Source of the DNA: Anthoceros angustus
Taxonomy: Eukaryota; Plantae; Anthocerotophyta
Length of the DNA stretch: 64,000 nt
Direction: 5' to 3'
Assembly: GCA_010909165.1 (NCBI GenBank)
Contig: MU008164.1
Location: forward strand, 1,364,001-1,428,000
Shown: positions 1,576 to 38,330 of the stretch, piece after piece
Layout: each line of letters begins with the position of its first letter
How positions within the stretch are numbered: the stretch's first letter is position 1
Translations under genes and position numbers: made by a program
Notes under the pieces: generated by a model
Database searches by the model: none
The model's input: only the letters and a program-made list of their open reading frames with translations
What the model was told of the DNA's origin: nothing

Positions 1576-2400
1576 CCATGGAAGCCACTAGGAACGCCAG
1601 AGCTACCTTCTCAGCGTGCCCACCACAAAGTACATCTTCCTCTTCCTTCTCACCCCGTGGCGTCAACACCAACTTCGTGGGAGGTACGTGGCCCCCTTCC
1701 TGCTTCAGACGTGCACTCGTGCTCTCTACCTTAAGCGCAATATCCTCTCTTCTTCCACCCACTAGAAATCGATGTGCCTGCTTTCTCACCTCATAGTTGC
1801 CACTGCAGGTTTCTTGTTAACTCCTGCTACCCTTCTTCTTGTTTCATCAATCCTGTCCACATCGGTCCACCTACCTGCATCTGCGTAGGCATTGGCAATG
1901 AGAACATATGAGGGCGCCTCGTGGGGGTCCAGCCTAACAAAGCTTTCGAAACACCAGATTTCCCCCTCTCTATCCCCGTGACATTCGCAGGCATTCAACA
2001 AAGACGTCAAGCCCACCACATTACTTTGGCCCTCACAGGACAGTACCATCTTCTCAGCCTCATCTCAATGGCCTGCACGCCCAAGAAGATCGATCATGCA
2101 GTTGTAACGCTCGATCCTGCTCCATTTGTCCACACAGAACAGGCACCTCATGTCTGAACCCAAGGGCTCGTGATACCCAGCAATCAGCGCCGTCCATGTC
2201 ACCACATCCCTTGTGGCCATGCCGTCAAAAGACCTGGCCTGCATCTTTCAATTGGCCAAATGAAGCATGCATGTCCACCAGTCAGTTGCCAACAAACAGG
2301 TCAGGAGGAATGCCGCTCTGCGAAACATCACACTGCACGTTTGTGCCAGATTCCAAGTCCGAGCCAAATGCACAAGCTTGAGTGACAGCTGAATTCACGA
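1575..2400 (-). pseudogene. PLS-class PPR pseudogene with E1/E2 and the N-terminal half of a DYW:KP domain
   Basis: Minus-strand translation gives DLFVGN*LVDMHASFGQLKDAGQVFDGMATRDVVTWTALIAGY, YNCMIDLLGRAGH*DEAEKMV, SYVLIANAYADAGRW, then KKPAVAT(I)EVRKQAHRFLVG (1-nt deletion) and LKQEGGHVP...LCGGHAEKVALAF. Two in-frame TGA stops; truncated before the CxxC motif. Confidence 0.85.
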
Positions 2401-4969
2401 ACACGTGAACATTCCTGACCTAAGCCCTGCTCCTGTCGACGACAATCGCTGGGAAATCCGTCCCCACCCCCACATTTTCTCGGAAGTGGAAGTGCTGGGC
2501 TCGTTGCGACCCTAAACCTCCATGCCGCCCAAATCGGATTTTGCCCGCCCTCCCAGGTTCAGGATTATCGCACACCTCGAGAAAAGCATCGTCACCCATC
2601 TGCATATCCAAGGAAACCACCTGCTCATCGACTCCAGCTGTCAAAAGGAAAAAATGGGATCAATTAGCTACTATTTTACTAAAATTTTTATAATAAACTT
2701 TATATCAATAGACGGCTCTTTACAAGGACTATCACCTCAAAATTGTTTTCAAACTTTAATTGTTAATATTTTGAAAGATATACGTAAGAAACTGCTATTT
2801 GGTATTGAGATGAAAAGTATGAGTGACTGTTTTGAGGTTAACCATAGGGCCTCGCCGGACCCCTGTTACGCAAGAAGTCAGCCAAACAAGAGCTCTTCTT
2901 ATCTCGTCTGCTGAAGAGTTCAATGGTTTTCATCCATCATCTTTAACTGAATAAATAATCATATGATACTTCAACAGATCTACCAAGTAAAAATAAATCA
3001 TACCTGGTATGAAGTTGAGTTGTATATCTGTTCAAAGTTAAAATAAAATTCATTATCAATGGGCCAAACTCCTTGGCAACGAGGGTGGGTCACTTCCTGA
3101 GAAGCAACACAAGCTCAACAGAGAGCATTCAAAAATAAAAGAAAAGATAGCACGGGTTCTTGTCATCTATTTTTTTGGTGTTATGTATATGTATATTAAT
3201 TAGTATTAATAAAAATAAAAAATTATTTCTTGAAAGATTAGGTTGAATTTGAATATCCAAACATATTCTACTTGTGATGAGTAGGCCATAAAGGTTGGAG
3301 ATGCAAAAAAATGGGAAAGTGTAAATGATAAGTGACAAAGGGCCTAACAACATAAAATCTATAAAAAAATAAAATAAGAAAATTCTTTGTCGCTTAGTTG
3401 GATTTACATATTCCTAGAATGAAAACCGCACATATGAGAAGTCCTATAAATATGTAATCCTTGGGTTAGTTCTTATTTTGCCAGCTATTCTCCCTGTGCG
3501 GGACTTTGTTGTATTTGTGACAAATCTAAAAAAGGACAAGAATGCTTTTGAGTTGACAGAGAGCTACCATATATGTTTATGCATGAGAGTTTAACCTTCA
3601 TTGAGTCTTTTAAGAGCTATAGCCAAGAAGTCTTGGATGATACACTTTGTGGTTGTAGCATTTGGCAAGTTATCAATATGTTTAAGTTGACAGAGAACTA
3701 GCATATACTTTATGCATGAGAGCTTAGCCTTCATTGAGTCTTTCAAAAGAGCTATGAGAATCGTGAGGAACCAGTGGGCTGGTTGGAGGCCCAGTGTCAT
3801 GTTGTGCCGTAGGAAAGGTTGCTCTATGAGATATTGTAGTTTCTTCGGTCAAGGGTGGGATTAAATGGGATTTCTAGACCGGATGTGCGCTCAATTCTCG
3901 TCGAGGTAGCAAAGATTTTTTAGTACAAACTTAAAAGATATATTGATCCAGTAAGATATTTTTTTACAATAAATTAGTATATATATTATGAAGGAATATC
4001 AGAAATAGAGTAGGAGATTAAACCGCATTCAGCATTAACATATCTAGATGGAAATTTTTGGGATTGCATAGGGCAACATCTTATTTGCGGGTTAACAATT
4101 TAGTATAATGATAACTACATAATATGATTATGTGATCTGTATAATTATAATTATAGACGAGAAAATATGAGACCAACTATATATGGTGGCAAACAACGAC
4201 GTTCGTTACTTAAAATTATAGATAGTAAGATACAAATTGTACGGACGAAGTTGTTAGGTTAATTGGAATGATGGATAGTGAAAATTTTACTAGAAGACAA
4301 AATCTGAGAACAATCATAAAAGATGGTGATAGTGAGAACATGAATAGTAACAATACATCCTGCCCATATGCTCTCATTCTTCATGCCTTGCAAATCCCTG
4401 CCCTGCACGGCTCAATTCCGCTTCCCGCACACTTCCCAGGACCATCTGCAGCTCTTCTTCAAAGGCCTCCCAGCTAACGCGGGATCCCCCGATCGACTGC
4501 ATTCTGTCTCGGGACGTGACCACCCTGCGATACCATCCTCTGCAATTACCGAGGTGAATGCATTTCTTACCAGCCGTCGCCCGCGGCCTCTTCTGACTTC
4601 TCTCCTGCTGATTACTCCTCATGAATCCAGTTCCTCGCAAGACACCATGTCTGATAACCTTGCCCGCAGCTCCCCAATCGTGGGCTACCCCTTACATGAC
4701 GCCGCTCAAGGATTTCCCATCTCCTCCCAGTACCAGTCGCAACCACAAGACGCAAACCCTGTCGGCCTTGGGTATTCAACAGGATGCTAACGGCGTCCCC
4801 CGCATCTGTCCTTGGACGGCTGACGACGAGGATGTCCTGGAGCCGCCCAACGACAATGGACCACCCAGACACGATGCCTTCAGGACAGCGCGCGGGTTGA
4901 AAGCATTACAGGCTGGTTACTCATGAAGGAGCATGGCCACACCGAACTCCCGCTGGCAAGATGAGTGAA

Positions 4970-6676
4970 CTATGGTAGAGACCAGTATAGCCCTCTTGTG
5001 AGTGTGGTGTATACCTCGGGACACTGGAATTTCTTCTTGGGGGGCTTTCCTGCTTGGTCTTGGATTTTGTTCTCCATCTCCCTGACCCTGCGAATAACGC
5101 TCGTTAAAATGCTCAACACATCCGCTGTCTGAGAGCCGTGAACGATGGCGGCCATCAGAGCTGTGATAAAGTGTGTGCCTTCCTTGACATCTCTGAAGGA
5201 TTCTTGTCCATGACTGGTGGAGAAAACAATGAGACAATCGCCCACAGAATGCAGGGCTCGGATTTCTCCGGCCCTCTTGCTCGCCACTTGGCTGCTCTCA
5301 ATTTCAGAGTCCTCGGCTTTCTTGCTTGTGGTAAGCCAGCCCCTGCCCCGACAAGCATTGATCAAAAACACCTTTGGCTTATCCGCAAGAAAGCTGGATT
5401 CAGTGATGGGCTTCAAGATATCATCAACAACATATAGCTTTTCGCCTGCTCCACTTATGATGATGTATTCCCTTCCATCCACCTCAATCCCCCCATGAGC
5501 ATTAATGCAACACAGAAAGCAGTCGTCGTCAGCTAGCTCGCGGACCTTCACAACCTGCCTAAGCACTTCTTTGATCTCCTCAGGATCGTCCACCACAATT
5601 TCGGTTTCAAACTTCAGGAACTCGAGAAGACCTTGAAGTCGCCCTCGGTCTACAGCTCCTCCAGATCTGTCCGTTTCCACGCTCACAATCAGTGCCAAAC
5701 CTCTCCGTCCGCCTGCTTGCACGCTGTGGTTAGGATAACTCCCAGCAATGTGTTGCACTTTCTGCACTTCCCTCTCTTCCGGGGATAGGTGTGTGGGAGT
5801 TCCATCAAACGACCTGCCACTGGATTTCAATCCTGCAACAGGTGCAACCTCAGAGTTTGCAAGCATGCTACTGAGAAACGACGTGTGCAGAAGCAGGACA
5901 CCTACACACAGGATTGAGAACAGCCACGAATTCGAACCTTGGAACTCTGCTTCGGGTCTGGCAACGTCCAAGCCCGGCCAGCGCCTCCCCACTTCCACTG
6001 CCTCTTCCGGAATCAGCACGAGGTCGCCCGGGTAGAGCACGTCCGGAACGCTGCCGTTCGATTCCCGCAGCTCCTCCAGCGTGAGGCCGAAGCGCACCGA
6101 GATCTTCCATGCCGAGTCGCCGGGCTCCACAACCACGGCCTTGGTCCGCCCGCGGCGCGTGGGAGCTGAGGGTGGATCCGCGCTGCGGGGAGGCCGTAGG
6201 GAGGCTGCGGGAAGTGCCACGGGCTTGGCCAGCGACACTGCGACGGATGAAGCTGCCAATCCTGGTCCGGAACACGGAGTTGAGGCGAGCGAAGCGGTTG
6301 CGGCACCAGAGGAGGAAGGCAGGCATGAAGATTCAGAGGAGGAGGATGGCTGGGGTGGCACAAAGAGCACTTCACCGGTGACGATGAGGTCTGATTGGAG
6401 GTTGTTCACCTGCTGGAGAAGGCGCCAGGGCACGTTCAGGCGCTGCGCCAACGTCCACAGCGTTTCTCTTTCCTTAACCACGACAACCGAGGAGGAGGAT
6501 GGCCGGGGTGGCACAAAGAGCACTTCGCCGGGGCAGATGACGTCTGAGTTGATGTTGTTCTCCAGCTGGAGAAGGCGCCAGGGCACGCCCAGGCGCTGCG
6601 CCAACGTCCACAGCGTTTCTCCTTCCTCAACCACGACAACCCCGCTGCCGGCGAGCCTGCCGCCAGGCGACGCCAT
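4970..6676 (-). CDS. Triple-LysM / caspase-type cysteine protease (peptidase C14) fusion protein; 568 aa ORF, or 533 aa if the 5833-5937 intron is spliced
   Basis: LysM-like repeats at aa 13-56, 64-107 and 180-223 (VxxGxTLWxLAxRxxV..L...N...DxIxxGxxLxxP). C14 domain aa ~324-565: RGLALIV, RSGGAVD, CINAHG (His394 at 5495-5497), KPKVFLINACRG (Cys442 at 5351-5353), DCLIVFST.HGQESFR...GTHFI.AL, QCPEVYTTLTRGLYW. No stops or frameshifts. Confidence 0.9.
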   Translation of the reverse strand: MASPGGRLAGSGVVVVEEGETLWTLAQRLGVPWRLLQLENNINSDVICPGEVLFVPPRPSSSSVVVVKERETLWTLAQRLNVPWRLLQQVNNLQSDLIVTGEVLFVPPQPSSSSESSCLPSSSGAATASLASTPCSGPGLAASSVAVSLAKPVALPAASLRPPRSADPPSAPTRRGRTKAVVVEPGDSAWKISVRFGLTLEELRESNGSVPDVLYPGDLVLIPEEAVEVGRRWPGLDVARPEAEFQGSNSWLFSILCVGVLLLHTSFLSSMLANSEVAPVAGLKSSGRSFDGTPTHLSPEEREVQKVQHIAGSYPNHSVQAGGRRGLALIVSVETDRSGGAVDRGRLQGLLEFLKFETEIVVDDPEEIKEVLRQVVKVRELADDDCFLCCINAHGGIEVDGREYIIISGAGEKLYVVDDILKPITESSFLADKPKVFLINACRGRGWLTTSKKAEDSEIESSQVASKRAGEIRALHSVGDCLIVFSTSHGQESFRDVKEGTHFITALMAAIVHGSQTADVLSILTSVIRRVREMENKIQDQAGKPPKKKFQCPEVYTTLTRGLYWSLP

Positions 6677-7079
6677 CGCCTCGCCCTAGCCGTCCACCTA
6701 ACCTTCCTCCTCCCCTTCCTCCCCGCCAGATTGCATTATCAGTGCTCCTAAACGGTTTCACGCCAGGGACGAACAGGAATAGCCGTCTACTGCACTAGAT
6801 GGCTGTCGCTGGAGTACCACTCCTGCTGGAGAGAGCCAAGCCAAGCCAATCCAAGCACAGCACAGCACAGCACATTGCAGACAGCAGAGCTACGACATTG
6901 CACCTCGTGTGAAGTGAAGGCACACACTGCTGCCTGGCTTGTGGAAAGATGCACCAAAAAGCGTGCATTTGGGATTGCATTGTGCTGGCCAGCGCGGAGT
7001 AGGCTGCACGCCTCTGCAGCTCAACACGCCAGTGGAGCAAGTGGAGCACGGCCCATCGCAATGCGCATCGTGCATTGTG

Positions 7080-7870
7080 CGGGACCTCGGGCCTTAACTT
7101 CCATGGAAGGTGCGATGCATCCTGGCAACTTCAAGGAACGTTGTTCTCGAATTTGATAGTGTCCAGCCGAGTTGTTATCCACCCCCAAATGCCAAGTCCG
7201 TACAATGTGAGCTTAGTCGAAGAAACGTTCTTGCCAAGTCATTGATCAGTCAAGCACCGCTGCTGCAGACTAGTGCCTGCAGGCTAGCCAGATAGAATAC
7301 CTATGCCATGTGATGTTGCCAAGGTGACGCTCTCCTCGGACCACGTCATGAATGGATGCAGTCAGCTTTCCACAAACAAGAATGCCACCAATGGATGTCC
7401 CACGAGTTCCTCGCAGACTAGTACTCTGCCACCCAGCTCACACCTTGTGTTCAACTTCCGTTTGTGATGGAAGCTGCTTTTCCGAGCAGGAGACCTGCCT
7501 CGTGAGGGACCTTCGGACAGAGATGAGAATACCGAGTAGTATCTATAACCACTTCTGCATGAAGGGACCAGACACAAGTCAGAAGTCGGCAGAATCGTGT
7601 GAGTGGCTTTCAGACCGGTACACTGTACCTCTGAAGTTGTGGACCACTGTCCATGAGAGGATGAATGCTGGCAATGCCAAGGTGTGGGCTCAACTCCATA
7701 GTTTCGATTTGGAGGCGTCATCCACCCTCAATCCGTACAGCGTGCGCTGTGTCGACAAGTTTTGGGCCTCCTTTTTGCCAAGTCAGTCAAGCAGGGATAA
7801 GCACCGATATTTCAGCTCATCAACACTGCACTATAGGATACGCAATGTGATTGATGTGATCCTCTGCCTC
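7080..7870. repeat. Paralogue of the 300-1575 repeat block (again two internal copies)
   Basis: ccagccgagttgttatccaccc at ~7163 matches ~508; ggaccttcggacagagatgag.ataccgag at ~7507 matches ~1001; catgagaggatgaatgctggcaat at ~7652 matches ~1157. Confidence 0.75.
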
Positions 7871-8169
7871 TTCTGCCTCCTTAATTGCTCTTAGAGCTCA
7901 ACTCCGCTAACAAAACATACATTTGAGGGATTCGACTATGCTGCGAGTTCTGCATGTCGCTCACCGAAAAGGTGTGCACGTACGTTCTCCGAAGGCCGCT
8001 GCTTGCTGCTCTTGCACGACATTACTGTCGTCCGACGTCACTCGCGGGATTCACAAGAACAGCCGCCGGGCCCGCCACCATTCATCGACATGGTGCAGGA
8101 GAGCCCACTGGTGAGCTAGGGCTGTCTGTTAGGCGGGAGAAGTTAATGTCCGTGGAAGACGGGGATGAT

Positions 8170-8526
8170 TTACTTCTTGTTGCAGTTGGATGGATCCTCC
8201 CTATCTCCGCCTCCCGGACGCTGTACATCATAGCCATCAGATTGTGCAACCAGACGGCCTGGAGTATCACTACGGAGCTGCCTTCCTACATGTAAAGATG
8301 CCACCCTTGCACATGCCTGAAGGAGGCAAACAACCGTTACGGAATTCGGTGCAATAATGCCTTCTTCTCGCATACCCCTGTAAAGACGAAGGGCTTCCTG
8401 TCCCATGCCCTTATGGAAATATCCTGCTATAATGGCATTCCCCATTCCTGCATCTTTCTGATGATGTCTGTCAAAAACGCCCTGAGCATCCTCTAGGCTG
8501 CCACACTTGGAATACATGCCTACCAA
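8170..8526 (-). pseudogene. PLS-class PPR fragment (one S-P-L stretch)
   Basis: MYSKCGSLEDAQGVFD...NAIIAGYFHKGMGQEALRLYRGMREEGIIAPNSVTVVCLLQACARVASLHVGRQL; closely resembles the repeats of the 25405-28614 gene; no gene context on either side. Confidence 0.8.
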
Positions 8527-8959
8527 ACGTCGACTCTTCGGGAAGCTAGCGAGCTGGAGGAACCCATTGTGAACATCATTTCAGGAGAATGAGGGTGCGG
8601 TGCGATCCTCCTTTGGATTAATCAAGGAGACTTGTGGCCAGGAAGCTGTTTTCGATGAACACGCAATGACGTTCAAATAGCTAATCTTTCTCAATGCATG
8701 GCCGATTGAGAAGATGAAAGATGCATTGGGTAGCCGGCGTAAGAGGAGTGTCCATGACATTTTTTGTTTTCTTGTAAATTTATTTGCACGACATCCTAAC
8801 ATCACTTCGAAGACTTTCTTTCTGAGTCTTTCTTTCTACAAAAGGAGGCATATGATTGGCGTTATTATTTTAATTTTCTTTCTGTAAGAAAAAATTATTA
8901 TAATATTATTTTTATGATCTTGATTTTTATTTTTCTGGAGGATCTTGTGTTAGTGTGGA

Positions 8960-14346: not shown

Positions 14347-16828
14347 CTAACCAGTTTCATCGCTGGAAGGGGAGGTGGGGCGCCACAAGGTGCCGCTCCC
14401 CCCGTCCATGAGCGCAATTCCTAAGCTGGCTAGATCGGCTCGAATTGCATCCGATCGACCATAGTCCTTGGCGGCTCTTGCGGCTGCTCTTTCTTGTACG
14501 CGTAAAGCTATGTCGTCTTCTGTCAGACCGGCCCGCTTAAGCGCCAGCCGTCTCATTTCTTCCAGAACCTGACCAAGAAGAACCAAGAATGCATGAGGAA
14601 AGAAATGTCAGGAGGTGTCATGCGGAGGAGGAGGAGGCAAGGGCATGAAAGGCATCAGGCCAAGGCGTCTTGCCTCTACGTTGCTGCTCACTGAGAGACC
14701 AAGCACATCCAGAACTTTGAGGACTTCGCTCAACAGCATCCTCAGTGATACAATTCGACTTTTGTCCTTGCGCCCCTGCAAAGACAGCAAGATGAGCTCA
14801 CCACAAAAGGCCCTCACGTTGGACAAGCAAACGCTGCATTTGTGAGTGACAATCTCGATTGTTAAACAATTCGGATACCTTCTTTGTGTGCATAAGATCG
14901 TTCATTAATCTCAAAGGCTCGGACAGGGCCGCTGCTGCTGCTGGCGTGTTCAAGTCATCTGCCATAGAGGCTGCAACTGTAGACCGCAAGGCATCCACGG
15001 AGGCCCGGACTTCCTGCGATGGGAGGCTGGTATTGTCGTCCTGTCCGTCTAGGCACTCCTGACAGTCGAATAGCGTCTGCAAAGCAACGAGAGCTCAGAG
15101 CAGAAAGCCACACAATTGGCAGGTACCGAGCGGTAAGGAGCGGAGCTTACTTGGTACAAGTAGTAGACGCGATCAGTTGCCTTCTCCACTTGGGACTTGG
15201 AATAGTTTACAGGTGAGCGGTATTGCGTGCCAACGAGAAACCATCTCAGAGCCAAAGGATGATACACTTCCAAGACCTGAATCACAAAAGAGTAGGTCAT
15301 GCTAAGTACAGAGATCTGGTTGCAAGACATACTAACGCTACTCGACAGATCCAACAACATGTAGGTTCTCTTACCTCCCTGATGGTGAAGAAGTTTCCTA
15401 GAGACTTGGACATCTTCTCTGCATCCACTGTCACAAAGCCGTTGTGTATCCAGTATCTTACACTGCTGTCCTTACAAGCTGCACAGCTTTGTGCAATCTC
15501 GTTCTCGTGATGTGGGAAGATGAGGTCTTGACCACCTCCATGAATGTCGAAGGCATGTCCCAAGTGCAGTGCACTCATGGCACTGCACTCTATATGCCAA
15601 CCAGGTCTTCCTGGACCCCAAGGGCTTTCCCAAAACGGTTCACCAGGCTTTGCACTCTGGAGTTCACCACACAGAGTGATTATAAGAGCACGCTCCCCAC
15701 ACCCGCCAACAAGCATCAAAAACCAACACGGATCTGAAACCAAAGGGATGCCTCTCTCACCATCTTCTAAATGCTGACCTTCCAAAGCGCAAAGTCGGCA
15801 GGATTCCGTTTCCGCGAATCCACAGCAACTCGTTCCCCAGCTCTGTTCTCCTCTAGTTTCCGGCCAGACAGCTTCCCATAGTCCGGAAAGGTGTCCACAG
15901 AAAAGTAGACATCTCCATCTTCCATCACGTATGCATGGCCATTCTCTAGAATCTGCTGACCAGGCACAGGGCACATTGATCAGAACCCTTCAAAGCACTG
16001 CCTTAAGCTGAAGCCCTGAGGCGCGAGACCTTCTTTCAGTATTCAGCACCACAACATGGAACACATGTTAAAAGAACCTGTTCGATCATCTGGATGATGT
16101 CGTCTAAGTGACCAGTGACTCTAGGCTCTACAGTCGGAGGAAGGCATCGCAAGGCCTTCATGTCAACATGAAACTCTTGACAGAATCTGTCACTCAGCTT
16201 AACCGGGTCTTCTTCGACCTCATTCGCCCTCTTGATGATCTACAAGCTGATAAGACTGTCAGAAGCAGACCATCCAGCACAAGAACATGCCTCAAGGACT
16301 CCACACCCCAAGACTTCACCTTGTCATCAACATCAGTGAAGTTGCGGACGTATGTTACATCATACCCCAAGTTCCTCAAATATCTGGCACCATGGCAGCC
16401 AAGTGACTGTCAAGGTGAGCACCATGTTTCACAATCTGCTAGAGGCACGAAGCGATGGGTGCTTGCCTGAACAGAACGTCGAAAGCAACATACACCCTTG
16501 CATGTCCGATATGGCTGTAGTCATAGGCCGTCACTCCACAGACATACATGCTCACCTTCCCAGCTACTCTTGGCTGGAAGAGCTCCTTCTGCCTGCTCAG
16601 CGTGTTGTACAAGTGCAGCTCTGTAGCAGCAGCAGCCGCAGCAACATGCTTCTCCACAAGCTCTTCCTCCCTGCTGGTATCGATCTGCACGCTCAGGTTC
16701 CTGGCAGAACACCGTTTCTGGCTCTGCAGCTGAGGCCTTCCCACCAAGCCACGGCTCCAACACCTGGACCTGTACCTGTACAAACCTGCTGCATGGCTGA
16801 AGCATGCTGGGTGCAGCACCGCTGCCAT
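14347..16828 (-). CDS. Cysteinyl-tRNA synthetase (class I), multi-exon, probably organelle-targeted; start codon uncertain (16828, or upstream in-frame ATG at 16903)
   Basis: [30 protein letters not shown] (HIGH), [76 protein letters not shown]; basic hydroxylated N-terminal extension. Confidence 0.93.
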
Positions 16829-25404: not shown

Positions 25405-28400
25405 ATGGCTGCCTGGCGCGTTGCACTCCTTTCACAAAGGACGACCCTGCCGAGAGGGCGTCTGGCTGGGCTCGGTGGGCTCCAGTGTTTTGTGGGCGAT
25501 ACACCGTTGTGCGATACCAGGCAATATAAGGAGAGCTCCTGTGGCCCTGAAAAGTTGTGCAAGCAGACGCAGATGGGTCATCGAGCTCCAATATCCAACT
25601 GGAGCATGCCGGATGATGGTGACCCTCGCAGGTCCAGGCCTGCAGGATACGAAACTGTGGTGACTTGTGAAACCGTGAGCCAACTGTGTCGGGAGGGGCA
25701 GCTTGCTGAGGCTGTTGAGGCTCTGGGAGTTCTGGTGCTGGCTGGATGTCGTGTTTCACAATCTGCCTTTCATACTGTGCTGAAAAGTTGTTTGGTGCAA
25801 AAGGATTTGGTTCTGGGTCGCCGTGCCCATGCTCTCACTGTGGAAAAGGGTTATGAGGTGGACACTTTCTTGTGCAACCAGGTCATGCGGATGTATGCTT
25901 CTCATGCCAGGTTGCAGGAGGCCATGGATGCATTTACGTTGGTGGCCGAACCAGATGCCTTCATGTGGTCTTCTATAATCTCTGCATATGTGAGCCATGG
26001 GCAAGCTAAGCAGGCCATAGAATTATATCACCGAATGCGCAGGTCAAGCGTGAAGCCAGATGGGCATGTGTTTGTGGCTGCCCTTCAGGCTTGTGCCAGG
26101 GGAGGGGACTTGAAGGCAGGGCAGCAAGTGCACGCTGATGTTTTGGCCAGCGGCGTTGAGCCTCATTTGTTTGTTTGGAATTGCTTGGTGGACATGTATG
26201 CCAAGTGTGGCAGCTTGGAAGACGCTCGAAGAGTGTTCGATGGACTTGGTGAGAAAGATGTGGTGACGTGGAATGCCATGATAGCAGGGTATTCCCAGCA
26301 GGGGATGGGTCATGAAGCCCTTCGTCTTTACAGTGCTATGCAAGAAGCAGGCATTGCTGTGCGTACTTCTGTGACATTTATCTGCCTCCTCCAGGCATGT
26401 GGAAGTGTGGGTACCCTGGCATTGGAGAATGGGAAGCAGCTTCATGCAGAAATCAAAGAACGAGGTGTTCTGACAGATGTGTTTGTAGCCAACAGCTTGG
26501 TAGACATGTATGCAAAGTGTGGCAGCTTGGCAGACGCCCGAAGGGTGTTTGATGGGCTCGGTATAAAAGATGTGGTGACGTGGAATGCCATGATTTCAGG
26601 ATATTCCCAGCAGGGAATGGGCCAGGAAGCTCTTTGTACTTACGGGGCTATGCAAGACGAGGGCAGTGCTGCACCTGATTCTGTAACGTTTGCGTGCGCC
26701 CTGCAAGCTTGTGCAAGTCTGGGTACCTCGGCTCTGGAAAAGGGGAAGGACCTTCATGCTCAAGTTAGGGAACGAGGGCTTCAGGCTGATGTGTTTGTAG
26801 CCAGTAGTTTAGTAAACATGTATGCAAAGTGTGGCAGCTTGCAGGATGCTCAGGGTGTTTTTTACTTGTTTGGTCAGAAGAATGCAGTGGCACAAAATGC
26901 CATGATAGCGGGGTATGCCCAGCAGGGAATGGGTCAGGAGGCTCTTCATCTTCACAGTGCGATGCAAGACGAAGGCATCCCTTTACCCGATGCTTCTACA
27001 TTTGTGTCTCTCCTGCAGGCATGTGCAACTGTAGGCACCCCAGCTCTGGAAAAGGGGAGACAGCTCCATGCACAAATCGTAAAACGTGGACTTCAAATTG
27101 ATGTTGTTTTAGGCTGCAGCCTAGTTAACATGTATGCCAAGTGTGGCAGTTTGGAGGATGCTGAAAGAGTGTTTGATGGACTTGGTGAAAAGAACGTGGT
27201 CACGTGGAATGCTATAATTGCAGGATATGCAAAAGGTGGCATGTTAGAAGACGCTCAAAGAACGTTCGTCAAGCTTCCTAAGAAGGACGTGGTGACATGG
27301 AATGCCATGATTGCAGGCTACTCGCAGCAAGGCATGGGCCATGAAGCTCTTCTTCTTTACAAAGCTATGCAAGAAGAGGGTGTTGTTGAACCCGATTCTG
27401 TGACATTTCTTAGCGCCCTCCAGGCATGTGCAAGTGTGGGCACCCCCGCTTTGGAGATGGGAAAGCAGCTTCACTCACAGATTGGGGACCAAGGGCTTGT
27501 GCCCGATGTTCTTGTAGCCAACAGTTTGGTGAACATGTATGCAAAGTGTGGCAGCTTGGAAGAAGCTCGAGCCGTGTTTGACGGGCTTCTCCAAAAAGAT
27601 GTGGTGACATGGACGGCTCTAATTTCCGGATATTCACAGCATGGCATGGGTCAGGAAGCCATTCATCTCTACAGTGCTATGCAAGAAGAAGGCATTGTTG
27701 CACTCAATCCTGTGACATTTGCTTGCCTCCTGCAGGCATGTGCAAATGTGGCAGCTTTGTGTGTCGGAATGCAGCTTCATGCAGAGATCAAAGAACACGG
27801 GCTTCAAGCTGACGTGCTTGTAGCCTGCAGTTTGATAAATATGTATGGGAAGTGCGGGAGCATGACAAATGCACAGCTGGTGTTTGAGGCATTGCCCAAA
27901 CGAGACGAAGTTGCATGGAACGCACTGATAGCAGGCTATGCCTGTCAAGGAGACAGTGACGTTGTCTTTGACCTGCTCCAGAGAATGAGAGAGGATGGCA
28001 TACAGCCAGCAGGCATCACGTTCCTCAGTGTGCTCACAGCATGCAGTCATGCCGGTCTAGTGAACCAGGGGCGGGAGTACTTTGCAACCATGAGCAAACA
28101 CTACGACATCACTCCCGAGGTGGAGCACTACACATGCATGGTGGATCTCCTCGGCCGGGCAGGCCGTGTAGACGAGTCACTAGCATTGGTAAGGACAATG
28201 CCTGTACACCCAAGTGCTGCCCTTTGGCACAGTCTATTGGGTGCTTGTCGAAAGTGGAGCAACGTGACGGTGGGACTGTATGCTTTCCACGAAGCAGTGA
28301 AGCTAGACCAGAGAGACACAGCGGCATATGTGTTGATGTCAAACATATACACCAGCGCCCACATGTGGGAGCAGGCACAGGAGATGCATGCAAGGAGGAA

Positions 28401-28614
28401 GGCAATCGGAGCATGGAAGCAGCCGGGCCAGAGCTGGTGGACAGACATGGACGGTGTGGTGCATAGCTTCCTGGTAGGGGATAAGAAGCATCCCGAAGGT
28501 GATGTCATATATGAAAGGCTAAAAGATCTCTTCCTCAAATTGAAGGAACAAGGGTATGTGCCACACCTGGACTCCTCGCATGTGGAATCTGGCTATCGCA
28601 TCTGCCTTGAATAA
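25405..28614 (+). CDS. Intronless PLS-class PPR protein (1069 aa) with E1-E2 and a truncated DYW:WW domain; organellar RNA-editing factor family
   Basis: Serial P-L-S motifs (DVVTWNAMIAGY / VTFxxxLQAC / VANSLVxMYAKCGSL), HYTCMVDLLGRAG, AYVLMSNIY, WKQPGQSWW...HSFLVGD; the ORF ends before HxE/CxxC. Confidence 0.95.
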   Translation: MAAWRVALLSQRTTLPRGRLAGLGGLQCFVGDTPLCDTRQYKESSCGPEKLCKQTQMGHRAPISNWSMPDDGDPRRSRPAGYETVVTCETVSQLCREGQLAEAVEALGVLVLAGCRVSQSAFHTVLKSCLVQKDLVLGRRAHALTVEKGYEVDTFLCNQVMRMYASHARLQEAMDAFTLVAEPDAFMWSSIISAYVSHGQAKQAIELYHRMRRSSVKPDGHVFVAALQACARGGDLKAGQQVHADVLASGVEPHLFVWNCLVDMYAKCGSLEDARRVFDGLGEKDVVTWNAMIAGYSQQGMGHEALRLYSAMQEAGIAVRTSVTFICLLQACGSVGTLALENGKQLHAEIKERGVLTDVFVANSLVDMYAKCGSLADARRVFDGLGIKDVVTWNAMISGYSQQGMGQEALCTYGAMQDEGSAAPDSVTFACALQACASLGTSALEKGKDLHAQVRERGLQADVFVASSLVNMYAKCGSLQDAQGVFYLFGQKNAVAQNAMIAGYAQQGMGQEALHLHSAMQDEGIPLPDASTFVSLLQACATVGTPALEKGRQLHAQIVKRGLQIDVVLGCSLVNMYAKCGSLEDAERVFDGLGEKNVVTWNAIIAGYAKGGMLEDAQRTFVKLPKKDVVTWNAMIAGYSQQGMGHEALLLYKAMQEEGVVEPDSVTFLSALQACASVGTPALEMGKQLHSQIGDQGLVPDVLVANSLVNMYAKCGSLEEARAVFDGLLQKDVVTWTALISGYSQHGMGQEAIHLYSAMQEEGIVALNPVTFACLLQACANVAALCVGMQLHAEIKEHGLQADVLVACSLINMYGKCGSMTNAQLVFEALPKRDEVAWNALIAGYACQGDSDVVFDLLQRMREDGIQPAGITFLSVLTACSHAGLVNQGREYFATMSKHYDITPEVEHYTCMVDLLGRAGRVDESLALVRTMPVHPSAALWHSLLGACRKWSNVTVGLYAFHEAVKLDQRDTAAYVLMSNIYTSAHMWEQAQEMHARRKAIGAWKQPGQSWWTDMDGVVHSFLVGDKKHPEGDVIYERLKDLFLKLKEQGYVPHLDSSHVESGYRICLE

Positions 28615-35786: not shown

Positions 35787-38330
35787 TCAAGCATTGTCTA
35801 AAGTTTGAACATAACTAATATTTATGGTTTGATCTTCTAACTTTTCCCTTATGTAGTGATACTCAACAGCTATATGTTTAGTTCTAGAATGAAAAGCGAT
35901 TTCGTGCAAGTGCAATGGCACCACGGCTATCACTAAACAAAGATGTAGGCTTAAGTTGAGGATGGTGAAGTTCACTCAAAACTAACTGGACCACACTATG
36001 TCTTTAGAAGCGAGGTTAGTACCTGTACTCAGTTGATGCCAAAGCTATAGTAGGTTGTTTCTTACTTGACCAGATATTGGTGCTCCTCCCAAGAGTAATA
36101 CATACCGATCTGATTTCGTGTGGGTCACAGTATCGGCATCAGCATATGCCGTTAGAGTTAATGTGTTGATAGCTGGTGTATGCTTGAACATCAGTCCTGT
36201 GTACATAGTGCCTTTAAGGTATCTAAATATACGCTTAACAGACATCCAGTGTTCACGTCCAGGATTCTCCAAGAATTGTGAGCAGGAACTGACTTCAAAA
36301 GATATATCTGGTCTCGTAAAATTACATAAATATATTAGGGTGCCAACAGCATGTCGGTATGGAACTGCTGACATTTCTAGCTTTTCTTCAGCTGTTTTGG
36401 GACTCATATCTGAGGTAAGCCTAACACCACTTGCAAAAGGTGTGGGTGCAGGCTTTGCATCCTCAAGTCCAAATTTAGCTAAACTCTCCTTAATATACTT
36501 GGTTTGAACTATACTTAGAGTCTTATTACCTCTATTTCGTATAATATTAACACCAAGTGCATATGTCATTTCTCCTAGATCGGACATCTCAAATAGAGTC
36601 CTAAGCCATGCTTTAGTTTGCTAGGAGAGTGAGGGAGTTTGTTGCCATAAAAACATCATCAACATAAAGTAGAAGATAAAATATATCATTGCGGATATTA
36701 GGATGTACATACAAGCATCACCACGGCTTTGCTTAAATCCTCTCCCAATAAGTTGTACATGTATGGTTAAATTCCAATTCTTGCTCGATCGCTTAAGGCC
36801 ATACAAACCTTTGATGAGTCGGCATACCCAATCTTCTTTGCCTTTGACTTGTAACCCTCGGGTTGTCTCATGTATATTTCCTCTTGCGGCGCCCATACAA
36901 ATATCTTTGTCTTAACATCCATCATGTGGAGTTCAAGATCATGTTGGGCACATAAGGCAAATATCATTGAGTGTGGCAAATTTGGCTCTTGGGGCATAAG
37001 TGGCCCAAGGTATGTAATCTAGACCGAGAATTTGTGTAAAACCTCGCTACTAGGCGTGCCTTATACCTTTCTATAGAACCATCTCCTTTTCTTTTAATTT
37101 TGAATACCCATTTGCTGGTTACTATCTTCCTACCCCTAGGTGGTTTGACCAATTCCATGTAGAGTTATTAACTAGGGAATTATATTGATCTCTGACTACC
37201 TTCCATAAGTCTTTTCGGAGAAGAGAAAGCTTGTTTTAAGGTAAGAGGTTCTTACGGGTCTATAGTTGCCTTGTAGACTTGAGAATAAAGTGATATAGGG
37301 GTATAGGATCATCAAAAGCTAGGTATCCTAAAGGAGGTTCCTTCCAACTGCGGGACTGAGATAGTAGGTCGGGATCTAAGGTTGTACCTTTGTGCAGGTG
37401 CATCATCCACAGGAGCGGGATCAACGACAGGATCTGCTGGCTCCACAATGTCATCCTCCAGAGGGTCATCAAACTCATCATCATGAGTGTCAACTGGCGC
37501 CTCTGCTGGGATGTCAACATCAGGTTCGTCTGGTTGTGTTATTCCAGGTTGTGGAATGGATGCTAACTCCTCCTCCTCCTGCATAATAGGTTCAACTAAA
37601 GGAACACGAGAAGCAGGAATGGGAAATGGAGTGAAATAATCAGTATCATCAAAATAAGAAGGGTCAATGGTCTCATCAAGAGGAGGACCAAGCCTATCAG
37701 CTCCCACTGTGGGGGAAAAGAGGTAAGACTCATGAAAAGTAACACTCCGGGCGTATAAAAGTTGCCTTGTAGAAGGGTTGAACAATTTGTACCCTTTGAT
37801 ACCTTCGGTGTAGCCAATGAAAGTGTACTTTGCTTTGGGATCCAACTTCTTACGCAATGCTTTGGGAATAAAAACATATGCGGGATCCAAAAATTGAAGG
37901 TGGTCAATAGAAGGCTTCTTGCCAATGAATGCTTCATATGGAGTCATACCTTGAGCTGATGTAGGCAATCGATTCATGAGATAGGTTCTTTGTGAGGAGG
38001 GCCTCAATAAGCCTTAGATAATTTAGCTTGTACCAATAAACAACTTGTGATCTCTTGAAGGCGTAGATTCTTGTTCTCGGCTACGCCATTTTGTTGAGGA
38101 GTGTAGACAACTGTAAGTTGTTGAGCTATACCTTCAGCTCGACAAAAATCCTCAAATTCAGTAGATGTAAACTCTCCACCATTGTCGGAACGTAAGGTCT
38201 TGAGTTTGTGATCTCTAAGTCTCTCAGCCCATTTCATGTAGTCCTTGAAGAAGTGAAAGGCATCAATCTTGTTTTTCAGGATGTAGGAAAAGACAAAACG
38301 AGAGAAATCATCTGTGTATTTACACACATG
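35787..38330 (-). mobile_element. Decayed Ty1/Copia pol (INT-RT-RNase H), frameshifted, gag/protease absent
   Basis: INT: DDFSRF, LRSDNGGEF, TPQQNGVAE; RT: KWVFKIKRKGDGSIERYKARLVA, LIKGLYGLKRS, MSDLGE, TRPDISF, VKRIFRYLKGT; RNase H: HSRTKHIAVEYHYIRE. INT lies upstream of RT, the Copia order. Confidence 0.9.

Follow-up and report, generated by a model that had tools for sequence, protein, structure and literature searches.

The hornwort Anthoceros angustus carries a gene that joins three LysM repeats to a caspase-type protease domain. It is very probably a genuine nuclear plant gene, transcribed and spliced, and its protease domain falls by sequence into a clade of bryophyte proteins. The gene lies on the minus strand of a 64,000-nt stretch of contig MU008164.1 (assembly GCA_010909165.1, positions 1,364,001 to 1,428,000), which is called the window below and whose first letter is position 1. 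A preliminary description of this stretch, made from its letters alone, had noticed at positions 4970-6676 an open reading frame (ORF) with LysM repeats and an animal-type caspase domain, and had interpreted it as a receptor-protease that senses glycans. Here we describe the structure and transcript of the gene, the two halves of its product, and its relatives.

Gene structure and transcript

The region 4970-6676 (minus strand) contains a single intact ORF that begins with ATG and comprises 568 aa, counting the stop codon at 4970-4972. Because an in-frame TAG is present 12 nt upstream of the ATG, an N-terminal extension of the protein is impossible within exon 1. To assess transcription, we used RNA-type contigs of a publicly available run from this organism. 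These contigs covered positions 4325-7220 with 0 mismatches, and the depth was zero beyond either end, so that the transcribed region consists of a 5' untranslated region of ~545 nt, the coding sequence, and a 3' untranslated region of ~645 nt. Two RNA contig ends, at 5834 and 5937, ran on 14 and 11 letters past the break, respectively, and both run-on tails matched the far side of the junction 5832/5938 exactly and uniquely within the window. These tails indicate that a 105-nt intron is removed and that the LysM and caspase halves are carried on one mRNA. The intron (5833..5937) is in frame, has GT-AG borders and lies in phase 1. The RNA depth bins were fully accounted for by the exonic parts of the contigs, with zero RNA contigs over the intron, and one DNA contig spanned it (5796-6057). 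The main product is the 533-aa spliced protein and not the 568-aa translation of the ORF, which corrects the preliminary description in its use of the whole ORF as the mature coding sequence.

Coding exon 1 (5938..6676), as delimited by Pfam and the RNA contigs, contains the prodomain with the three LysM repeats, and coding exon 2 (4973..5832, from the RNA contigs) contains the linker and the caspase domain. The base composition jumps inside this one gene, from a GC content of 65% and a GC content at third codon positions (GC3) of 73% in exon 1 to a GC content of 51% and a GC3 of 54% in exon 2. This step at a phase-1 intron is compatible with two modules of separate history that were joined there.

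The intron codes for the sole transmembrane-like segment of the unspliced ORF (aa 251-273), and the maximum Kyte-Doolittle hydropathy over 19 residues was 2.0 with the intron and 1.4 after splicing. No hydrophobic leader or signal peptide was found at the N-terminus of the protein, and because the first LysM repeat begins at residue 13, a signal or transit peptide has no room. From the absence of a signal peptide and the removal of the sole transmembrane-like segment by splicing, we predict that the 533-aa main product is a soluble, intracellular protein and not a membrane receptor. A membrane location for the receptor-protease was accordingly given up: the hydrophobic segment on which it could rest is encoded by the intron and is absent from the RNA contigs.

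Analysis of DNA contigs from the same sample showed that the depth over the locus was even, at ~10, and equal to that of the flanks. One DNA contig bridged position 6641, inside the start of the ORF, to position 8303, within an adjacent ORF of the PPR family. Together with the RNA contigs and the splice junction, the DNA contigs that run into the PPR ORF show that the gene is an expressed plant gene and not a contaminant. The other genes of the window, described below, are likewise of plant type.

The caspase domain

Pfam assigned Peptidase_C14 to aa 325-564 (4985..5704; residue numbers are those of the unspliced ORF) over the full profile (positions 1-233 of 233, E 1.1e-30). In a phmmer search against all PDB chains, the domain matched caspase-8 (E 5e-15), insect caspases, and caspase-3 (E ~1e-11), and the caspase-like blocks that had been lined up by eye in the preliminary description proved to be real in these alignments. 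The putative catalytic residues are His394 in the motif INAHG (5495..5497), which aligned to the His of the caspase-8 SHG motif (H317), and Cys442 in the motif INACRG (5351..5353), which aligned to caspase-8 C360. Two arginines of the S1 pocket are also present: Arg337 (5666..5668) corresponds to R260 of caspase-8 and R64 of caspase-3, and Arg495 (5192..5194) corresponds to R413 of caspase-8 and R207 of caspase-3. In an alignment of 80 caspase domains of the plant clade and of metazoans, the columns of all four residues were at least 90% conserved. Asn440 stands in place of the Gln of QACRG and Ala in place of the Ser of SHG, and both substitutions are common to the plant relatives. From the basic S1 pocket (R337/N440/R495), the enzyme is predicted to cut on the C-terminal side of acidic residues.

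An AlphaFold2 model of aa 283-568, built on the 80-sequence alignment, had a pLDDT of 85.8 and a pTM of 0.82 and showed the six-strand caspase topology (b1-b6). The model contained a low-confidence linker of ~35 residues with Asp and Glu at aa 448-480, and a further linker of ~100 residues separates the LysM repeats from the caspase domain. The top lists returned by Foldseek from the PDB, the AFDB clusters and Swiss-Prot consisted of caspases only. A VIA search, which is independent of Foldseek and covered 48,161 PDB representatives, gave a graded result. The highest scores were obtained with caspase-3, -8 and -9 (Z 27.3, 27.2 and 26.8; 23-30% identity), followed by caspase-4, CED-3, Dronc and c-FLIP (Z 22-23; 17-24%) and by MALT1 (Z 22.2 and 19.7; 20%). 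Arabidopsis metacaspases 4 and 9 scored Z 18.6 and 18.1 (11-13% identity), bacterial GSU0716 Z 17.8 (16%), legumain Z 17.2 (15%), and yeast Yca1 Z 15.5 (13%). The top 8 matches, with Z 22-27, were all caspases or c-FLIP and ranked above MALT1, the metacaspases and legumain.

Since the sequence, the predicted structure and the S1-pocket residues are all nearest to those of animal caspases, the protease domain is of the caspase type (C14A-like), closest to animal caspases, then to MALT1, and then to metacaspases. The distinction from metacaspases drawn in the preliminary description was upheld by the top matches in the PDB, the AlphaFold DB and Swiss-Prot, which were all caspases, by the gradient of VIA scores, and by the basic S1 pocket. 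Metacaspases and MALT1 have acidic S1 pockets and cleave after Arg or Lys, whereas the hornwort protein has Arg337 and Arg495. A metacaspase (C14B) identity was rejected on the basis of these S1 arginines and of the structural scores, which ranged from Z 12 to 19 for metacaspases (18.6, 18.1, 15.5 and 12.3) at 11-15% identity. A paracaspase identity was likewise rejected, as the structural similarity to MALT1 was below that to caspases in the VIA search. Membership of the bacterial EACC1-associated caspases (NF047832) was rejected at 16.1 bits against the NCBIfam cutoff of 140 bits, and none of the PADLOC defence models matched the caspase domain.

The LysM repeats

Pfam found three LysM repeats in the N-terminal half (PF01476, E 1.5e-31; 108.5 bits against a curated cutoff of 20.9 bits), so that the earlier report of an intact ORF with three LysM repeats and a C14 domain holds. 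Repeat 1 (~aa 14-56; 6509..6637) was delimited from Pfam and NCBIfam stretches, repeat 2 (aa 66-107; 6356..6481) was the best Pfam LysM stretch (profile positions 2-43 of 43), and repeat 3 (aa 183-223; 6008..6130) matched the SafA-type LysM of NCBIfam. Repeats 1 and 2 were 76% identical in amino acids and 89% identical in nucleotides, and the latter value points to a recent internal duplication.

The closest LysM domains in the PDB were those of peptidoglycan-binding proteins, namely LytE (E 8e-16), a Thermus NlpC/P60-related protein (E ~1e-9), SleL, and SafA. Repeat 3 by itself matched the LysM of the Thermus cell-wall-binding endopeptidase (NlpC/P60-related) at E 1.2e-9. The same PDB search with the LysM half returned no LysM of a plant receptor or receptor kinase below E 0.01, and the plant-specific Pfam models LysM_RLK (20 against 27 bits) and LysM3_LYK4_5 both stayed under their cutoffs. 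Judged from these matches, the repeats are of the bacterial type and resemble the LysM domains of wall hydrolases. A plant LysM receptor kinase or receptor protein was rejected as an identity for the product, which has neither signal peptide nor anchor and whose repeats fall under the cutoffs of the RLK-type LysM models.

Relatives in bryophytes and the origin of the caspase domain

The LysM-caspase protein itself was not found in a collection of 15 billion proteins, and homologues were sought without success in word-indexed searches, whether the query was the entire protein or aa 320-568. Relatives came only from an exhaustive HMMER search that took the caspase domain as query and from a search with a profile of the clade described below. 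The HMMER search yielded 1,536 matches at E ≤1e-3, among them 128 at E ≤1e-10, the best of which was 37% identical. The most similar caspase domains were transcripts of the hornwort genus Nothoceros, at 38-42% identity. A metagenome scan gave only short contigs with 22-47% identity, and no shared DNA was revealed when the plant-like loci of relatives were compared with the window by blastn.

In a tree of 53 rows, the domain was placed in a clade of 16 rows supported by an ultrafast bootstrap (UFboot) value of 97 and a Shimodaira-Hasegawa-like approximate likelihood ratio (SH-aLRT) value of 92, with every named animal caspase outside it. A clade without named animal caspases was also found in a tree of 138 rows (SH-aLRT 93). 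Both trees were unrooted and were built from sequences other than metacaspases and paracaspases. The named members of the clade are two transcripts of the hornwort Nothoceros aenigmaticus and proteins of three liverworts: Marchantia polymorpha Mp6g00860 and Mp6g00900 with their paralogues (P0012 and P0155-P0160 in our numbering; PTQ31690 and others), M. paleacea KAG6554914 (P0020), and Riccia fluitans KAL2622267 (P0037). Several of these proteins bear the automatic UniProt label 'Caspase family p20 domain-containing protein'. The liverwort proteins of the clade are 409-1113 aa long, with the caspase-type domain at the C-terminus, and Marchantia proteins of 807 and 1113 aa carry an N-terminal alpha/beta-hydrolase domain (SERAC1/DUF676-like), which was not found in the Riccia fluitans protein. 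These sequences place the domain in a bryophyte clade of caspases, shared by hornworts and liverworts, that are combined with varied partner domains. The search for bryophyte orthologues proposed earlier thus found relatives of the caspase domain in a hornwort and in liverworts, but none with LysM. The term 'animal-type' used in the preliminary description is retained for resemblance and not for descent, since the unrooted trees set the domain apart in a bryophyte clade of its own, not nested among the named animal caspases.

Some members of the clade, namely P0009, P0016, P0024 and the second caspase (7538-8365) of the plant-like contig L006, have lost the catalytic His, the catalytic Cys or both (SAHG is changed to SAYG, for instance, or INACRG to VISGHG). 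These are probable pseudo-proteases, to judge from their motifs, and are reminiscent of c-FLIP.

Outside the clade, the clade profile matched mainly named metazoan caspases, one Picozoa protein, and several unnamed proteins. The Picozoa protein (P0177, from Picozoa sp. COSAG04 in EukProt) combines a caspase-type p20 region, 39% identical to the hornwort query over about half of the domain, with ankyrin repeats; it is a further caspase-like protein from outside the animals, Picozoa being placed near the red algae. When 185,579 genomes of bacteria and archaea were scanned for the active-site pattern, 17 sequences matched it but none was a relative, and the possibility that the caspase half came recently from a bacterial donor was rejected on this evidence. 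The unrooted trees are compatible with ancient vertical descent and with early horizontal transfer alike. Acquisition by an early bryophyte from an animal, viral or protist donor would account for the lack of any seed-plant relative among the nameable ones of the 1,536 HMMER matches, and the named matches examined outside the clade were all metazoan caspases, bar the one from Picozoa. The clade, however, falls inside none of the named animal subfamilies and has deep internal branches, and its genes contain introns and partner domains of plant type; we therefore consider such a transfer unlikely, although it keeps a substantial share of the probability.

Relatives adjacent to NB-ARC-LRR genes

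Four plant-like contigs from metagenomes and Logan assemblies (L001, L005, L006 and L007) contained a caspase ORF of the clade that was followed closely downstream by an NB-ARC-LRR ORF in the same orientation; some of these pairs formed tandem arrays. Such units were located at 1855-5564 and 7538-12643 of L006, at 591-6739 of L001, at 10001-12501 of L005, and on L007. In L006, the caspase exon ends in a phase-1 donor (CAG/GTAAGT, the slash marking the exon border), and the acceptor in front of the NB-ARC exon (TTACAG) has precisely the corresponding phase, so that splicing is predicted to yield a caspase-NB-ARC-LRR protein, that is, a nucleotide-binding leucine-rich repeat protein (NLR) with an N-terminal caspase. 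In other units, an alpha/beta-hydrolase-like ORF of 236-260 aa with the motif GHGLGG was situated between the caspase and NB-ARC ORFs. Hydrolase-NLRs have been described for liverworts, and the hydrolase ORFs in this position recall them. The NB-ARC-LRR neighbours of these clade members hint at an immune role.

Proposed mechanism and alternatives

We propose that the product is an initiator-like caspase in which the CARD or DED of animal initiators is replaced by a LysM module that binds the ligand directly; to this explanation as a whole we assign a probability of about 0.45. The long-prodomain, initiator-like layout seen in the preliminary description was confirmed, and a long LysM prodomain followed by a caspase domain makes activation by induced proximity a reasonable hypothesis. 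The mechanism itself, a caspase clustered by glycans and activated by dimerisation, is put forward tentatively, with the balance somewhat against it. Under this mechanism, polymers that contain N-acetylglucosamine (GlcNAc) would reach the cytosol. Candidate ligands would be fragments of peptidoglycan or oligomers of chitin from bacteria, cyanobionts or fungi, or material from damaged plastids with a peptidoglycan wall. Several molecules would bind one multivalent glycan through their three LysM repeats, and the resulting proximity would allow the caspase domains to dimerise through the C-terminal beta6 strand and become active; the protein might also cut itself at an acidic position within the 448-480 linker, such as after D456. 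The active enzyme would then cut substrates after Asp (or Glu), with an output in immunity, in the control of symbiosis, or in cell death.

Several points weigh against this proposal. LysM domains are usually extracellular, and an intracellular LysM sensor would be unusual. No relative that combines LysM with a caspase domain was found in the word-indexed and clade-profile searches. The linkage to NLR-type genes concerns paralogues in other plants and not the LysM-caspase gene. The replacement of Gln by Asn at position 440 may, speculatively, change the P1 preference, for instance toward Glu. Finally, a minor isoform that retains the intron, and with it the membrane segment, is possible, as the Logan RNA contigs lose rare variants.

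Among the alternatives, the one that survives best holds that the protein is a processing or regulatory protease with no part in glycan sensing or cell death, its LysM repeats serving as an anchor to proteins or walls, or that it is a decoy or pseudo-enzyme like c-FLIP. Many animal caspases act outside cell death, and the clade members mentioned above that lost His or Cys show that non-catalytic roles exist in the family. The present copy, on the other hand, keeps the His/Cys dyad and both S1 arginines, and its ORF is intact and expressed, so that we regard this alternative as unlikely.

A link to the plastid was also considered, in which the target of the LysM repeats is the peptidoglycan of the plant's own plastids and the protease acts in plastid quality control, division or damage sensing. 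Bryophytes retain a plastid peptidoglycan wall, and the repeats are of the type found in bacterial peptidoglycan hydrolases, which fits such a function. The protein nevertheless lacks a transit peptide, with its first LysM repeat starting at residue 13; the peptidoglycan of plastids, located between the envelope membranes, would come into contact with the cytosol only after damage to the plastid; and the relatives of the caspase domain are associated with NLR-type genes. A plastid role is hence improbable in our estimation.

Less support is left for a membrane-bound receptor-protease, in which a retained intron would add a 23-residue hydrophobic segment, place LysM outside and the caspase inside the cell, and let splicing switch between the two forms. 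The intron is indeed 105 nt long, in frame and free of stop codons, and it brings the hydropathy to 2.0 over 19 residues. The RNA contigs were spliced only, however, with depth bins that leave the intron uncovered; the signal peptide is missing; and a run of 35 codons without a stop is expected by chance at ~19% ((61/64)^35). We consider this form to have only a slim chance of being correct. An artefact, that is, contaminant DNA or a chimera of a bacterial LysM gene with an animal caspase gene, could be suspected from the abrupt drop in GC content from exon 1 (65%) to exon 2 (51%) and from the absence of the protein from large protein collections, but it was dropped as effectively excluded given the spliceosomal intron taken out of an mRNA that joins both halves, the DNA contig across the junction at an even depth of ~10 and the one that ties the gene to the PPR ORF, the bryophyte proteins as closest relatives, and the lack of any relative in the 185,579 bacterial and archaeal genomes.

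Neighbouring features in the window

The PPR ORF adjoining the caspase gene is located at 8170-8526. At 8137-8530, the DNA word depth climbed from ~10 to 75-655 over this ORF, with several contig ends and small skips, a pattern suggestive of a PPR-type repeat that exists in multiple copies and here adjoins the caspase gene. A PLS-class PPR gene with E and E+ motifs, intron-less and coding for 1069 aa, is present at 25405-28614 on the plus strand; it is a typical organellar RNA-editing factor of land plants. An exon-like fragment of a class I Cys-tRNA synthetase was observed at 15297-15974 (minus strand), and a retroelement fragment with a retroviral polymerase SH3-like domain at 37312-38007 (minus strand).

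Discussion

The hornwort protein shares with metazoan caspases of family C14A (caspase-8, -9, -3 and -2, CED-3 and Dronc) the same fold, at Z 22-27 and 23-30% identity, the context of the His/Cys dyad, both S1 arginines, the p20-linker-p10 order, and a long prodomain of the initiator type. It differs from them in having three LysM repeats instead of CARD or DED and AHG and NACRG instead of SHG and QACRG, and in belonging to a separate bryophyte clade. With the bryophyte 'Caspase family p20' proteins it shares that clade (97/92), 27-42% identity, and the NACRG and AHG variants, although the Marchantia proteins have an alpha/beta-hydrolase at the N-terminus and none of these proteins has LysM. 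Plant metacaspases (C14B) and MALT1 have the same clan CD caspase-hemoglobinase fold, with lower similarity (Z 12-19 for the former, and Z 22 with 20% identity for the latter).

The bacterial EACC1-associated caspases (NF047832), mostly from Actinomycetota, follow the same architectural idea, as they often combine C14 with LysM or PG_binding_1. The similarity of their protease domain to the hornwort one is remote, however (16 of 140 bits; Atlas score 0.76), and in terms of sequence they are an architectural analogue and not a relative. The plant LysM receptors CERK1, CEBiP, LYK and LYM offer a functional analogy, in that they couple the sensing of GlcNAc polymers to immune signalling. Unlike them, the LysM-caspase lacks a signal peptide, a transmembrane segment, a kinase and a GPI signal, and it carries sensor and protease on one polypeptide. 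A further functional analogue is provided by NOD1 and NOD2, whose cytosolic sensing of peptidoglycan feeds caspase-linked pathways.

For decades, research on plant cell death has proceeded from the premise that plants have no caspases and that 'caspase-like' activities are due to unrelated proteases. We found no paper on caspase-type genes in hornworts, liverworts or any plant in a full-text literature search, whose coverage excluded most subscription journals, and no functional literature on the liverwort caspase p20 proteins. The bryophyte genome papers that we examined made no mention of caspases or LysM. A statement that plants lack caspases still appears in a 2025 paper (PMC12521494), and in the survey of Klim et al. 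(2018), caspases outside animals were reported only from Reticulomyxa and some viruses (PMC5982838). What is new here is the fusion of a caspase-family protease to a sensor module (LysM) in an unexpected kingdom; the liverwort relatives were already in databases. The suggestion of an undescribed module therefore stands as regards the literature, in which no paper on bryophyte caspases was found, and must be reduced as regards databases, where entries from Marchantia, Riccia and Nothoceros represent the same caspase type.

A wider view, which we hold to be doubtful but worth stating, is that bryophytes keep a true caspase lineage that was lost in seed plants and use it as a plug-in executioner on varied sensors, be it LysM, NB-ARC-LRR or an alpha/beta-hydrolase. 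The LysM gene would then encode a cytosolic sensor-caspase for peptidoglycan or chitin in a single protein, like an inflammasome in one polypeptide, with a role in immunity or in the control of cyanobacterial or fungal partners.

The present results describe an expressed caspase-type gene in a land plant, with catalytic residues that appear intact from its sequence, fused to a predicted ligand-binding module, and placed in a clade common to hornworts and liverworts. If the protein is active, it would be a directly testable sensor-protease in a transformable group of plants, and the timing of the origin of caspases would be reopened. Taken together with the NLR-adjacent relatives, an active protein would also point to a coupling, in some plants as in animals, of caspases to the sensing of glycans or to NLR-type sensing.

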